DNA of 64,000 bases from Octopus sinensis (Eukaryota): positions 61,516,464-61,580,463 of the forward strand of contig NC_043011.1 of assembly GCF_006345805.1 (NCBI RefSeq). The letters are read 5' to 3'. This document shows positions 19,801-47,500 of the stretch, piece by piece. Each line of letters starts with the position of its first letter. Positions within the stretch are counted from its first letter, which is position 1. The notes below the pieces were generated by a model. That model was not told where the DNA came from. It was given only the letters and a program-made list of their open reading frames with translations, and made no database searches. A program made the position numbers and the translations under genes.

Positions 19801-22800
19801 AACCTATTTCTTATTATTAATGCTTCCCCTGATCCCCTCACTAATTATTTCTGACTTAGGTTTATGTACAAAAACACAATGTCCCTTTGATTTTTATTCT
19901 TACCGAGGAACCTTAAATAATTACGAAATTCAAAATTATTAGAGCCTCATCATTTACGAGAAATTATAGAAGTGTACTAACCATATCTTACTTAATGTAT
20001 TAAAAGTTAGAAAATTATCAGTTATGTAATAATTTCAAAACTCCTAACGAAGCAATCTTCACACAAAACAATTCACTAGTCACACGAAAAATCAGAAAAG
20101 TTTGAAAAGTCTTATCTCTAACAACAAGCATCCAGATATGAAAGTTTCCAATTAATTATGTGGTTTTAGGCTGCAATTAAATGTTTTAATTTATATTATG
20201 TTTCAACGAAAATTTTAAACTTGCAGAAGTGGACAGAGTGAACTTTTGCATGAGTGAAGATTATTGTAGTGTGGCTTGGAAAAAGTATCCTGACGCATTT
20301 AATGGACAAAGAGATGTTAATTTCTGTCCGTAAATATCCTTTTATTTTCAATAATACTTTTGTTAGCACATCTATTGAATATATTATTTATCTAAGTTTA
20401 ATAATCAATACTAGTATTTAGCAGCTAATGCTAATTACTACTGGTATTTCTTAGATGAGATCATTTTAAGAAATTGTGCGCAGCGCACACGATTTAAAAC
20501 ACTCAAATAATTTATTAGGTTTTTATCATAAAACAGAGAAAAACAATTTAGACCACCAAAAAGTAAAATTATTTAATACATTCCAAAATGGTACAGGTTT
20601 CAATTTCACTAAGATGTCTTAGTTCAAAATTTAAGCAAAATATATCCAGTTATGTTAAGCAATAATTTTCAGTAATCATATCAACCGATTTATGTTTGCT
20701 TTCCAGGCGATTAAGAATGTATAAAGAATGTGCAAGGAAGAAAGGACCATGGTATTGTGTAAAGATAATGGAATTTGAAAGCCTGAGTTTTCAGGAGTGT
20801 TTTCGTAAGAAGATTTTCAAAAATTTCTTCACATCATATTCTTAGAAATCTTGAAGCTTTGAACTAAATTATAAACGATATTTTTGTATAAATTCTTATA
20901 GAAGTAATTTGAAATTTGCCATTCGACTAAAATCAAAATAATAATATTGTTGATTCTTTTCTATTCAATCAACATTCATATAAGCGATGGAATTTTTGTC
21001 TACACTTAACACAAGGCCCAGAATTTCTAGGGAGAGAGCAGTTGATTAGTTCAACCCCAGAACACAAGTGGTATTTAATTTAATCGACTCCGAAAGGATG
21101 AAAGGCAAAGTCGACACCGGCGAAATTGGATCTCAGGACATAACGGCAGACGAAATACCGCTGAGCATTTTGCCCGGCCTGCTAACGATTCTGCCAGCTC
21201 GCCGCCCTTAAAGAGCAATGGAATATAAATATCAGTACGCTTGTATTTAATCATGACTGTTTACGTCGTTGTATTTCTGTATACCACCATGTTGATTTTA
21301 TCGATTAGTAAAGATTACGAGAGCGTATAGCATGATCTAAGTCGGGAATTACATTATCAACGACTATACTAAACTTGTTAGAATGGAAACTTACAATGTG
21401 ACAGTAACCTCGATGACTCTACAGAGTTACTCGTGTGTTTATTTCATGCTAAAATGCTCGACCACGTCTAATAATTACGCGAAATATTAATTTTAAGCTA
21501 ATTAATCAGGTTCTCACATTTTTATTCCAGCTGTTCCTAAAAGTAACACGTCAAGGAACCTTTCAGTCCACGTTATGTTTTCACACTGTGCCTTACTAAT
21601 ACTTATTCGGTGCACATTTTTGTGATGGAGGAATTAAATACCAAATACCAATATATTTGATGTAAGGACAGTTATTAAATATCACACATTTCATATTGAT
21701 ATTTTACTTCCGCGTGAGCGGAAAATTCCACCCGGAAGACCTCCACGACGGTGGAGTGACGATTTGAGGAGGACGATTGGGATCACGTGGATGAGAAAAG
21801 CGCGATCCAGAGAAGAGTGGACAGCGTGCTGTGACCAGTGGTGTCAAATGGACGCCTGAGGGACTGGTCGGTCAAAGTGATCAAAGTGATTTTACTTTCA
21901 CAATATTGTCAACTATTTTCCTTCGGTAGGAAATAAAAATGGCTGTTGAATTATCTGACAGTATTAATCCGGTGATATAATAATACTAACACGAATATAT
22001 CAACAAGAAATTATCATAGGAATATCTCAATGATTATTATTTCCAACTAAAAGTCTCAATTCTCTTATGCATCAGCGAATCGTTAACAGAAAATATGCTA
22101 CGTATGTTCATTATCCGAGACGATGCCGATTCTATATAACTCTGGTGACACAGTGATATATCTGCATAAACCTTAATAGAAATCTATTTATACACTGTAG
22201 GCTAACGATATTATAAACAAGATCCTTAATCATAAGATAATACTGTAATGTTGTTTTGATAGGCCTGAATCTTACTAGAATATTAGCGTCCTGGCAGTGC
22301 AATATAACAATTACTGTATTTATTATGTGAATGTAACGTCGATTATGCCAGTGTAACATCAGAGTAAATCTGTTGCATTATCTTTGGGAAGTCTATTGCC
22401 AATTTATCTCCGACAGTTCAAGGAAATATTTAACATTTCCGTTTGCAAATTGGTGAAAAGTTGATTGATCCCTTAGCATATTTCTTTAGACTTTTCCTTT
22501 ACACACCACCTCCAACAGTTTTGGAAGAGCGTTTGGGATTTGCTTTAGTTAGATCGCTTTAGATCACTTTAGATCACAGGTGACGAAGGGAAAATGGAGC
22601 TGTTTGTTAAGTATTATTGTGAGAACCAGTACATGTAGTATTGAAACATGGCAGAGACTGATTGGTGGGAAGCTAGTGCGGTCGACATGTCGCATAAACT
22701 AACGACAGACAATACTAAATTATCTACGAGCAACTCCATTTATCTAATATTTCAATAGCAGTTCTAATCTATTCTCATTGCAGTTAATATTCCATTCAGC

Positions 22801-22812
22801 ACTTATTACTGA
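16879..22812 (+). CDS. G2: secreted six-Cys peptide precursor, 97 aa (exons 16879-16912, 18788-18817, 20227-20329, 20707-20804, 22784-22812)
   Basis: Canonical GT-AG introns; 34+30+103+98+29 = 294 nt with no internal stop. [97 protein letters not shown]. Hydrophobic N-terminus resembles a signal peptide. TATAAG at 16826 and AATAAA at 22854. Confidence 0.88.
17050..17150. repeat. (CA)n/(TG)n microsatellite, one of many (others ~7730-7775, 26985-27072, 52587-52642, 58313-58362)
   Basis: Directly visible; these explain the HTHT/CVCV ORFs. Confidence 0.98.
17701..18020 (+). mobile_element. tRNA-derived SINE specific to G2 intron 1
   Basis: A-box GGCTTAGTGG and B-box GTTCGATTCC; 3' part shared with 34855-35243; absent from other units. 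Confidence 0.8.
19050..19480 (+). mobile_element. Degenerate Penelope-like RT fragment in intron 2 (copies at ~27630-28040 and ~36800-37200)
   Basis: [25 protein letters not shown]...FHKSNS...SKYPPSII matches the PLE pattern ITIETNxxxVNFLDVTxxL...KPN...SNHPPSI. Confidence 0.65.
21010..21208 (-). mobile_element. SINE in intron 4, duplicated with the array (also ~13436-13633, 29460-29658, 38740-38938, 47655-47856)
   Basis: Reverse complement of the 7009-7223 family at the same position in each unit. Confidence 0.8.
21711..21888 (+). mobile_element. 3' remnant of the same RTE LINE at the orthologous site in G2 intron 4
   Basis: Near-identical to 40381-40558, with the same tail and the same flanks. 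Confidence 0.9.
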
Positions 22813-44580: not shown

Positions 44581-47500
44581 ATGAGATATATTCTATGCAT
44601 TTGTCTTACCGTTGGTAAGTATTTAAAAGACAAATCTTTATCTTCCGAGATGCAAATGTTCGGCCGTAAACTCTGAATAGGATTTCATGCAATTTACAAC
44701 ACTTCCCACTTATATATTTCTATGCGTACACGCAAAACTACTCTCGAGCGTGCACACATACGCACACAGATACATACACAGACACATACACAAATATATA
44801 TATATATGTATATATATATCCATATATATATAGGTGTATATATATATGCATATCCGTATATATATAGATGTGTGTATGTATGTATGTATATATATGTATA
44901 TATATATATATATATATATATATATATATATATTAGAAGGTGAATGAATTATCCTAGTATGGATAATTCTGTTAACCGATACCTGGGTAGCAAATTTATG
45001 TCAGAAAACACGGTTGAAGCTATATGCCAAGGGCAGGAATCCCGTGTTCTCGTGTGTAAATTTGTGTGTTTTTTTAACTATGAATAAATGAAAGAATGTA
45101 GTCGAACGACGATTTTAACAAAATTCCTTTACGCTCGAAACATGTTTCGAATATGCAGCCTACGAAACATGTGTCGAGAGTAAAGGAATTTTGTTAAAAT
45201 TGTCGTTCGACTACATTCTTTCATTTATATATATATATATATATATATATATATATATATATATATATATATATATATATATATATATATATATATATAT
45301 AGCTGTATGTATGTATATATATGTGTGTATATCTCTATATATAATTGTTAAAGACAACAAACGTTAAAGCAAGATATGCGTTAATATTACTGGAGCCCTA
45401 TTAATCAGTTACAGCACTTACCTAGCGTACCTAGTCGTGTAGATCCCCTGTGAACTAACACCCCCATATTTTCTATATATGCATGGATATCTATCTATCT
45501 ATCTATATATATATATATATATATATATATATATATATATATATATATATGTGTGTGTATGTGTGTGTGTGTGTGTATGTGTGTGTGTGTTCATGTGTGT
45601 GTATGTGTGTGTGTGTGCTTGTGTGTATGTTTGTATATATATGTGTCTATACATAGATACATACGTATATAGATACATACATACATACCTACATACATGA
45701 CACTGTTTTCCGAAGAGCTAAACATAGAGGGGACAAACAAGGACAGACAATGGGATTAAGTCGATAACATCGACCCCACCAACTAGAACTTATTTAATCG
45801 ATTTGAAAAGGATGAAAGGCAAAGTCGACCTCGGCGCAATTTGAACTCAGAACGTAACGGCAGACGAAATATCGCTAAGCATTTCGCCTTGCGTTTTAAC
45901 GATTCTGCCAGCTCGCCGCAACTGCATATTTTTCTGATTTATGGACACTTGCATGACTATAAATGTGCACGTACGCCTGTATGTACGTTAGTATGCATGT
46001 AAGTATGTTTGTGTATGCATGTATGTATGCATGTATATGTGTAGATTTTTACAGTTCCAGTGATGGATTGGATTTGTAGTCTTCGAATTGCCTTTCTACT
46101 TTCTGGTTTATAATTTCTCACGTTTGGTATTTAGGCAGCGTGTGATTAATTACTGGTATAAGCCTGAACTTTTAATCTGGATAGAGAAACTACAGATTTC
46201 TCAATAGTTCAGCGTAGGTACTCTCTGTTTCGTTATTATATTTCATAATCATGTTTTTTTGCAATCCCTGCATTTATTCATTTTCTTCTCCCTGTTCCAG
46301 TTATTGGGTTGCAGTTATGTTGGTGCTTAGGTATGTAAATATTAATCATCAGCATTATTTACTTTGAAATGCGATACTATTTATCGATCCCTATTTGTCG
46401 AAACATTCAGATATGCAACAGGGACAAATTTCATGACTTTTAGTAACCAGTTTTAACATAAATATATGCTCTGAGGTTGTGTGGGATGATGAATGGAGGC
46501 ATAATGTCGCCATCACTAGTGATTACTCTAAAGACCATGATGTTGACTGGATGTTTCGTTATTCTCAATCTTGGTACATACACTGGGGACATCTTACTTG
46601 TATTATAGGAATAACCATAAGTGTGTAACTTGAACGCTGTCAACGTATTAAAAGTTAGAAAATTATCAATTATGTAATAATTTCAAAACTCCTAACGAAG
46701 CAATCTTCACACAAAACAATTCACTAGTCACACGAAAAATCAGAAAATTTGAAAAGTCTTATCTCTAACAACAAGCATCCAGATATGAAAGTTTCCAATT
46801 AATTATGTGGTTTTAGGCTGCAATTAAATGTTTTAATTTATATTATGTTTCACGAAAATTCTTAACTTGCAGAATATGAAAAGATGAAATATTGTGTGGC
46901 TAAAAGATATTGTCCTGAGGCTTGGAAAAAGTATCCTGAGGCATTTAAGAGAGAAAGTCATGTTAATTTCTGTCCGTAAATATCAGTTTATTTTCAATAA
47001 TACTTTTGTTAGCAAACCTATTGAATATATTATTTAACTAAGTTTAATAATCAATACCAGTATTTAGCAGCTAATGCTAATTACTACTGGTATTTCTTAT
47101 ATGAGATTATTTTAAGAAATTGTGCGCAGCGCACACGATTTAAAACACTCAAATAATTTATTAGGTTTTTATCATAAAACAGAGAAAATCAATTTAGACG
47201 ACCAAAAAGTAGACAAATTAATTAATACATTTTAAAATGGTACAGGTTTCAATTTCACTAAGAATTCTTAGTTCAAAATTAATGCAAAATATATCCAGTT
47301 ATGTTAAGCAATAATTTTCAGTAATCATATCAACCGATTAATTTTTGCTTTCCAGGCGATTAAGAATGTATAAAGAATGTGCAAAGAAGAAAGGACCATG
47401 GTATTGTGTGAGGATAATGGAAATGGAAAGTCTAAATTTTCCTAAGTGTTTTCGTAAGAGGATTTTCAAAATTGTTTTTCACATCATATTCTTAGAAATC

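Follow-up and report, generated by a model that had tools for sequence, protein, structure and literature searches.

Why should the coding parts of a gene differ more among its tandem copies than the introns that separate them? We address this question for an array of small genes in a 64,000-nucleotide (nt) stretch of the Octopus sinensis genome, hereinafter the window (RefSeq assembly GCF_006345805.1, contig NC_043011.1, positions 61,516,464 to 61,580,463, forward strand), which is AT-rich (about 34% G+C) and abounds in microsatellites and copies of short interspersed nuclear elements (SINEs). Self-BLAST, the repeat families D9-D20 and an alignment of the units delineate a tandem array with units of 8.4-10.4 kb that are 92-97% identical, each corresponding to one small gene copy on the forward strand: a dead copy, G1, and the copies G2-G5. 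Exon 3 of these genes is the most variable alignable 103 nt of the 8-10 kb unit, and its excess of change overwhelmingly replaces amino acids. On balance, we lean toward the view that selection for diversity and short-tract recombination jointly yield this contrast between exon and intron. The gene models derive from the window sequence together with homologues, and place the features of the array as follows:

12668..49361, + strand, tandem array (G1, dead, and G2-G5)
13367..13431, + strand, truncated type-B exon 3 of G1 (DLVKMKYCVSKKYCPETWKKHP), the dead copy at the array edge
16879..16912, + strand, G2 exon 1, ATG and 11 signal-peptide codons, phase-1 donor G/GTGAGT
18788..18817, + strand, G2 exon 2, 30 nt, remainder of the signal peptide, phase 1-1
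20227..20329, + strand, G2 exon 3, 103 nt, type A
20707..20804, + strand, G2 exon 4, 98 nt, donor C/GTAAGA
25764..25797, + strand, G3 exon 1
27357..27386, + strand, G3 exon 2
28676..28778, + strand, G3 exon 3, type B
29159..29256, + strand, G3 exon 4
34599..34632, + strand, G4 exon 1
36517..36546, + strand, G4 exon 2
37955..38057, + strand, G4 exon 3, type A
38438..38535, + strand, G4 exon 4
44581..44614, + strand, G5 exon 1
46301..46330, + strand, G5 exon 2
46873..46975, + strand, G5 exon 3, type B
47356..47453, + strand, G5 exon 4

The contrast was first noticed in a sequence-only reading of the window, whose counts, made by eye, hold on recounting. The third exons of G3 and G4 differ at 23 of 103 nt and 17 of 35 amino acids, as against 5 of 115 nt in the intron just upstream, and those of G2 and G4 differ at 7 nt falling in 6 codons, each of which replaces the amino acid. 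Among G2-G5, the sole difference in the 34 coding nt of exon 1 is ATC/ACC, and the exon-3 peptide keeps Cys8, Cys14 and Cys34 in every copy, as it also does in G0 (an older paralogue within the window), G1 and the relatives from O. bimaculoides. The single purely synonymous codon change that had been claimed is likewise borne out, there being one unambiguous synonymous difference (TGT/TGC) between the type A and type B exons. When the comparison is extended as a sliding window along the alignment of G2-G5, exon 3 shows 37 variable columns of 103 (mean pairwise p 0.20), and the median of the gap-free 103-nt windows is 8; just two windows exceed exon 3, and in both the variability comes from misalignment of microsatellite or inserted sequence (mean p 0.35-0.43). 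The highest-scoring windows also include exon 4 (20 of 98 variable columns, mean pairwise p 0.11). The 380-nt intron between the two exons has a p of 0.054 and the sequence upstream of exon 3 one of 0.046. These two islands of divergence fit the exons closely, each opening no more than a few bases from the acceptor and closing before the exon ends: that of exon 3 begins with the first base past TTGCAG and ceases four codons short of the donor, and the 250 nt before it are almost invariant across five copies. When exon 3 is compared with well-aligned flanks by Fisher tests, the claim that the exon diverges faster than the introns stands in five of the six copy pairs (p = 1e-4 to 1e-8). The signal exons are conserved inside the array, with 0-1 of 34 nt differing in exon 1 and 1-4 of 30 in exon 2, as compared to 20-26 of 103 in exon 3 (the G2-G4 pair apart). 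Global alignments of intron 1 and of G5 intron 2 were dropped as a neutral reference, as microsatellites and large indels inflate their distances (0.10-0.28), and 1-nt indels likewise invalidated a simple count of variable flank positions made without gaps.

The gene plan behind these counts is regular. Exon 1 supplies 34 coding nt (MRYILCICL(I/T)V) up to the donor G/GTGAGT, with a TATA-like TTTATAAG about 50 nt upstream, and exon 2 a further 30 nt (VIGLQLC(W/C)C(S/L)). Exon 3 begins in phase 1 after TTGCAG, is exactly 103 nt in G2-G5 and ends in CC/GTAAAT, while exon 4 (98 nt; RLRMYKEC...GPWYC...EC(F/T)) lies about 380 nt downstream in each of these copies. All four have intact reading frames through exon 4, with neither frameshift nor stop in exons 1-4, canonical GT/AG splice sites throughout and intron phases 1, 1 and 2. 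The mature domain spans at least 67 amino acids with six invariant cysteines, C-x5-C-x19-C-x8-C-x8-C-x13-C. The sequence-only reading had taken exon 3 as the mature-domain exon; its 103-nt length was exact, but it encodes only the N-terminal half, exon 4 contributing the other three cysteines. We considered exon 3 as a terminal exon closed by a TAA stop and ruled this out: the TAA sits in the donor CC/GTAAAT, the homologues extend further, and exon 4 is present in every copy. A pseudo-exon some 370 nt 5' of exon 3 is also ruled out, its frame being incompatible and its GT donor present in G4 only. Where translation is continued across the exon-4 donor (20805-20860, 38536-38600 and equivalents), G4 and G5 have a frame-shifting 1-nt insertion relative to G2 and G3, which argues that the donor C/GTAAGA is used. 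With their intact frames, canonical splicing, invariant cysteines, annotated exon plan and a promoter block conserved across species, G2-G5 look functional as far as their sequence can tell. The units also differ in structure: the promoter and exon 1 of G4 are doubled (34166-34199, identical to the copy at 34599) by a 433-nt tandem duplication at 33888-34758 (98% identical), about 940 nt of additional sequence follow the exon 5 region of G4 in the G5 unit (39442-40380), and intron 2 of G5 is only 542 nt (46331-46872) as compared to about 1300-1400 nt in G2-G4.

A search of 1.84 billion proteins with a HMMER profile of five exon-3 peptides led to three octopus proteins, namely O. bimaculoides LOC128249871 (P0001, XP_052830374.1; E = 6.8e-11) and LOC128249908 (P0002, XP_052830461.1; E = 6.9e-6) and O. 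vulgaris CAI9735818.1 (P0003), all named 'uncharacterized' or 'hypothetical'; a full-length profile reaches E = 1e-38. Two further matches of the profile search (P0004, P0005) are spurious, being repeat proteins that match a motif of 13-20 amino acids only, and a word-index homology search with the concatenated exon-3 peptides gave no match. G2-G5 belong to the octopus-only orphan family of LOC128249871 and LOC128249908. These are true homologues: G2-G5 are 43-45% identical to them and to CAI9735818.1, and the family has in common the signal motif M-x-[YF]-[FI]-L-x-I-C-L...VGLQ, the cysteine spacing, the exon plan, the intron phases and the chromosome region. The invariant columns are C8, C14, A17, W18, P22, F33, C34, R36, L37, M39, Y40, C43, G48, P49, C52, E59 and C66, which include the invariant family motifs A-W...P and R-L-x-M; Lys20 is invariant in the window and the aligned O. 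bimaculoides proteins, save for Arg in the copy that we call ObX. A literature search found no paper that treats the family or mentions its motifs or LOC numbers, and the gene family is so far undescribed. LOC128249908 isoform X1 (XP_052830460.1/61.1 locus) carries a dibasic LNRKRRE insert directly before the exon-3 domain, and CAI9735818.1 (282 amino acids), in which the signal start is followed, without exon 2, by the exon-3 domain and then by unrelated sequence, looks like a mis-modelled family member.

The orthologous locus of O. bimaculoides (L001) aligns collinearly with the window, at 82-87% identity, across G0, a relic exon 1 and those parts of the array that contain exon 1 and exons 3-4. 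G0 has its syntenic orthologue there in LOC128249871, and the array is represented, in the O. bimaculoides stretch compared, by a single unannotated copy of array type, ObX. The array of G2-G5 is young and perhaps confined to O. sinensis. P0001 maps on L001 with exons at 10001-10037, about 11427-11468, 11939-12041 and 12384-12481 and a last exon ending at 12962. There are at least five family loci in O. bimaculoides within about 125 kb, with L002 (CM046618.1, 51001064-51026170) containing two further members 80-100 kb from the orthologous locus. The features needed for the comparison, along with the candidate fifth exons, are:

5434..5536, + strand, G0 exon 3, older paralogue and orthologue of O. 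bimaculoides LOC128249871
near 1530-1571, G0 exon 2
5912-6009, G0 exon 4
6467-6495, coding sequence of G0 exon 5 (...EDRQRHRG, then stop)
L001 21924-22026, exon 3 of ObX, array-type, unannotated
L001 22803-22900, exon 4 of ObX
39264..39358, + strand, candidate exon 5 of G4, by homology to exon 5 of G0 and LOC128249871
21531-21625, 29984-30078 and 48023-48117, equivalents of the candidate exon 5 in other array copies

G0, whose exon 1 lies just beyond the left window edge, shares with G2-G5 and LOC128249871 identical lengths and phases of exon 3 (103 nt, phase 1 to 2) and exon 4 (98 nt), and a phase-1 intron divides the signal peptide in the window copies and LOC128249871 alike; the introns of G0 are not alignable to those of G2-G5. 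Its intron 2 contains a microsatellite-rich stretch of about 3.4 kb (1834-5233) that the O. bimaculoides orthologue is without. Between G0 and the array, a relic exon-1-like start (MKYFLRFCL, 11438-11464) with a destroyed GT donor has a syntenic counterpart at L001 15230-15256 and is probably the remnant of a further family member.

By the Nei-Gojobori method (NG86), the nonsynonymous divergence (dN) of exon 3 is 0.21-0.27 in the A/B and G3/G5 pairs, whereas flanks that align well diverge by 0.05-0.08 (p 3e-4 to 1e-7, with an odds ratio of 3.3-5.4), and the A/B pairs have 16-18 amino-acid-changing codons as against 0-1 codons with synonymous change only. The same excess recurs between species: ObX differs from the array copies by 0.11-0.13 in introns, by 0.22-0.30 in exon 3 and by 0.28 in exon 4, with a mature-domain dN of 0.34-0.39, a ratio of dN to the synonymous divergence dS (omega) of 1.4-1.6, and an odds ratio of dN versus introns of 2.9-3.4 (p 1e-6 to 1e-8). 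Thus, dN is 3-5 times the intron divergence inside the array and about 3 times between the species. The latter comparison is informative because homogenization among paralogues is unable to shrink intron distances there. Moreover, codons with a conserved amino acid show 2-3 synonymous differences between ObX and the array copies, with 2.2-2.4 expected from the transition and transversion rates of the introns. A control is provided by the two G0 orthologues, which diverged at the same species split: their dN is 0.12 and their omega 0.31, with 13 of 66 codons changing the amino acid as compared to 31 in ObX versus G3 (p = 0.0015), i.e., amino-acid change is 2.5-fold faster in the array lineage. 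The claimed conservation of the signal exons does not carry over to this scale: exon 1, on which the interspecies signal comparison rests with exon 2 of ObX masked, differs at 5 of 34 nt with one amino-acid change, about the neutral DNA level.

Codon site models, which the sequence-only reading had proposed as a check on positive selection, were run as our own implementation of Goldman-Yang models on 35-67 codons and 4-6 sequences, a sample of low power. The single-ratio model (M0) gives an omega of 1.16-1.82, above 1 on every topology tried, and under the selection model M2a, 30-55% of sites fall in a class with omega 2.5-3.9 and cluster at mature residues 2, 3, 10, 12, 15, 23-26 and 31. The point estimates lie above 1 but no likelihood-ratio test is significant (p 0.09-0.80). 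The inference of positive selection accordingly stands in direction, with replacements far exceeding silent changes and dN exceeding intron divergence on both scales, but falls short in the codon tests and has to share the contrast with gene conversion. With so few sequences, the pattern fits selection for diversity rather than proving it.

Several observations weigh against selection as the driver. M0 does not differ significantly from omega = 1 (p 0.29-0.80), nor M2a from the nearly neutral M1a (p 0.32-0.46 for exon 3, 0.09 for exons 3 and 4 with ObX). The sixth copy pair, G2 versus G4, is without an exon excess, at 6.7% in exon 3 and 4.0-7.6% in the flanks. In comparisons among the array copies, conserved codons carry about twice as many silent differences as the introns predict (18 versus 8.3, summed over non-independent pairs), and the NG86 dS of the A/B pairs is 0.17-0.31. 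The G0 orthologue pair (5434-6009 versus L001 11939-12481) has 11 silent differences where 4.0 are expected from introns (p = 0.003). About 100 nt of intron 2 before exon 3 (37855-37954 and equivalents; L001 21824-21923) are about 95% identical between the species, as compared to about 80% in the preceding 60 nt, and may be a splicing or regulatory block; given this block and the G0 silent excess, introns may understate the neutral rate. Further, ObX may not be a strict orthologue of the array copies, the candidate exon 5 of G2-G5 is ambiguous, with two possible acceptors 13 nt apart leading to differing C-terminal tails, and the structural model considered below is of moderate confidence (predicted local distance difference test, pLDDT, 75.6; predicted template modelling score, pTM, 0.59).

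The first of the rival explanations builds on the within-array silent excess, which implies that part of the exon divergence may predate the homogenized flanks. By this account, concerted evolution, through gene conversion or unequal crossing-over, has homogenized the introns, promoters and signal exons around older lineages of exon 3 and exon 4 that evolve at omega of about 1, with the divergence of the exons blocking heteroduplex formation, and there has been no adaptive acceleration. Recombination among the copies is demonstrable: the grouping supported by parsimony-informative sites switches along the unit (heterogeneity chi-square 39, p = 1e-4), with G2 and G5 grouping against G3 and G4 toward the 3' end of intron 1 (22 sites to 0) and in some segments of intron 3, G2 and G4 against G3 and G5 in exon 3, and G2 and G3 against G4 and G5 around exon 1 and downstream of exon 4. 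These mosaic topologies show recombination at the 100-700 nt scale, and the exon-3 types run B-A-B-A-B along the array in an alternation that the flanks do not follow. Together with the silent excess, this makes homogenized flanks part of the within-array contrast. The account also draws on the A/B dS being above the intron divergence of 0.04-0.08, on omega = 1 not being rejectable, and on the first 12 codons, where A and B are about as different from each other as either is from the ancient paralogue G0. We nevertheless consider it unlikely. The dS of 0.2-0.3 was set aside at face value, as codon-by-codon inspection places most of its steps in multiply-hit codons, leaving TGT/TGC as the sole unambiguous A/B synonymous difference, and the A/B codons with conserved amino acids show 2-4 synonymous differences where about 5-6 would be expected if the age of the exons matched their dN. 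An overall omega of about 1 with about 20% of the sites invariant implies an omega above 1 at the rest, and between the species synonymous change equals the intron expectation, with dN 3 times higher. The limits of the two islands lie no more than a few codons from the exon borders, the intron between them is conserved, and this would require selection against converted exons in any case. Gene conversion, which the sequence-only reading had named as a possible full explanation, thus enlarges the contrast; by itself it is insufficient for the two exon-fitted islands flanking a conserved intron, the near-absence of clean synonymous differences and the persistence of the pattern between species.

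The silent excess of the G0 pair is beyond the reach of paralogue homogenization and bears on a second rival, in which mature exons mutate faster than introns, so that silent and replacement sites are both ahead. A targeted or transcription-linked mutator of this kind was once proposed for conopeptides. The twofold silent excess in the array and the G+C content of the exons (0.34-0.39 versus 0.25 in intron 3) could be read in its favor. However, ObX versus G2-G4 is without a silent excess, the exon-3 excess is overwhelmingly nonsynonymous, the G0 exons have merely 1.3-1.6 times the intron divergence overall, the numbers are small, and constraint on the introns would produce an identical signal; we therefore regard exon-biased mutation as very improbable as the main cause. 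A related idea, which we entertain as a long shot, is that the array is a cassette-style generator of diversity, with the conserved introns, parts of which are also conserved between the species, serving as recombination substrates that reshuffle independently diverging variants of exon 3 and exon 4 among the paralogues, and with the mature exons perhaps mutating faster than the introns, a possibility at which the silent excess of the single-copy G0 pair hints. Were this true, hypervariability would be partly built into the locus and not purely a matter of selection on random mutations.

A third rival would dismiss the pattern as the product of decaying pseudogenes or of a mis-assembled or over-polished tandem repeat. 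G1 (12668-13939) is plainly dead: its homology to the array extends no further than about 700 nt 5' of exon 3, which ends at 13431, where a deletion of about 720 nt fuses it to the SINE found downstream of exon 4 in other units. Further, no annotated protein corresponding to G2-G5 turned up in the databases searched, exon 5 is uncertain, and tandem repeats of 93-97% identity assemble poorly. Yet, neutral decay is unable to make exons 3-5 times faster than the adjoining introns, four copies are open through exons 1-4 with canonical splice sites and six invariant cysteines, and the separate O. bimaculoides assembly repeats the exons, the synteny and the exon-above-intron pattern, so that we find an artefact or non-function scarcely credible. 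The SINE-like element in question has 300-nt copies at 13437, 21013, 29463, 38743 and 47661, one fixed per unit downstream of exon 4, and further copies at 18202, 26508, 35882, 45713, 7007 and 62496. It resembles what we take to be the abundant tRNA-derived octopus SINE; ARAGORN and Rfam made no call on it, and the Rfam and tRNA scans of the whole window were empty. Long compound microsatellites, with (AAT/GAT)n grading to (GAA)n and (TA)n/(TG)n tracts, occupy 8100-8500, 646-900 and 11600-12000.

A Pfam scan (E up to 10) returned no family, a PDB profile search (E up to 10) no relative, and a Foldseek comparison of the model with the PDB no match (best E 7-8, template modelling score about 0.3). 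AlphaFold2, supplied with a seven-sequence alignment, predicts an all-helical mature domain with helices at 2-8, 15-20, 22-25, 33-47 and 49-60. In this model, exon 3 is the N-terminal half of the mature domain, comprising the first helix and a long loop, and the hypervariable sites map there, to residues 1-12 and the 23-31 loop, with conservation of the Cys, Trp and Pro scaffold and of most of the two long exon-4 helices. The hydrophobic N-terminal leader points to secretion, as does the dibasic RKRR just before the domain in LOC128249908 isoform X1. Candidate roles range across venom or saliva, antimicrobial, reproductive and chemosensory functions.

Putting these together, we propose that the array would have arisen by recent tandem duplication, with G2-G5 as four intact genes of a family that is confined to octopuses and encodes small secreted proteins. 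Diversifying selection, the presumed cause, would replace amino acids on an exposed interaction surface encoded by exon 3 and, more weakly, in exon 4, while the Cys/Trp/Pro/Tyr scaffold stays fixed. Exchange of short tracts among the 8-10 kb units, by recombination or gene conversion, would keep introns, promoters and signal exons alike, with converted exon-3 variants being lost. The variable surface might bind an external or rapidly co-evolving partner, such as a prey or predator target, a microbe, or a reproductive or chemosensory receptor; should the proteins turn out to be constituents of saliva or venom, antimicrobials, or ligands in reproduction or chemosensation, specificity would likely reside on the surface formed by the variable helix and loop at the N-terminus.

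Genes whose exons outpace their introns have precedents. The classic cases are the crotaline snake-venom phospholipase A2 (PLA2) isozyme genes and the abalone sperm lysin/sp18 genes, where, as in the octopus array, tandem paralogues have mature exons that outpace introns and untranslated regions, with nonsynonymous rates at or above synonymous and intron rates. The proteins are unrelated, and in those systems dN/dS above 1 was shown with many sequences whereas here it is a point estimate. In conopeptides, too, introns are conserved and the silent rates of the mature region are elevated. The cause of exons evolving faster than introns was left open for conopeptides and snake toxins alike.

The sequence-only reading had likened the array to conotoxin and snake-venom genes, and the evolutionary pattern is indeed alike, but this is analogy and not homology, there being no Pfam or PDB match. 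The conotoxin superfamilies of Conus are likewise multi-copy families of small secreted peptides with cysteine frameworks, their genes have short exons, mostly three, and long introns rich in transposable elements, and they combine a conserved signal with a hypervariable mature region of Ka/Ks above 1 (PMC10561478). They have neither a sequence nor a fold relationship to the octopus family. Unlike in conotoxins, the octopus mature domain is split over at least two exons, just one of which is hypervariable within the array, G2-G5 are without an evident pro-region, and omega above 1 falls short of significance; the host, too, is an octopus.

Among molluscs, the MgCRP-I family of Mytilus galloprovincialis comprises mollusc-specific orphan secreted six-cysteine peptides whose function is unknown despite assays (PMC4558851). 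It resembles the octopus family in having a phase-1 intron within the signal peptide and in its gene duplication coupled with positive selection (PMC4558851), but its Cys3 and Cys4 are adjacent, its cysteine-rich region lies entirely in one last exon, and it has a dibasic pro-peptide site. There is no detectable homology between the two, and in MgCRP-I positive selection is significant (P about 1e-8), unlike in the octopus array. Few fast-evolving families of secreted peptides have been described in cephalopods, and the array, with its orthologous locus and its slow neighbor G0, offers a compact system for separating selection, concerted evolution and exon-biased mutation.

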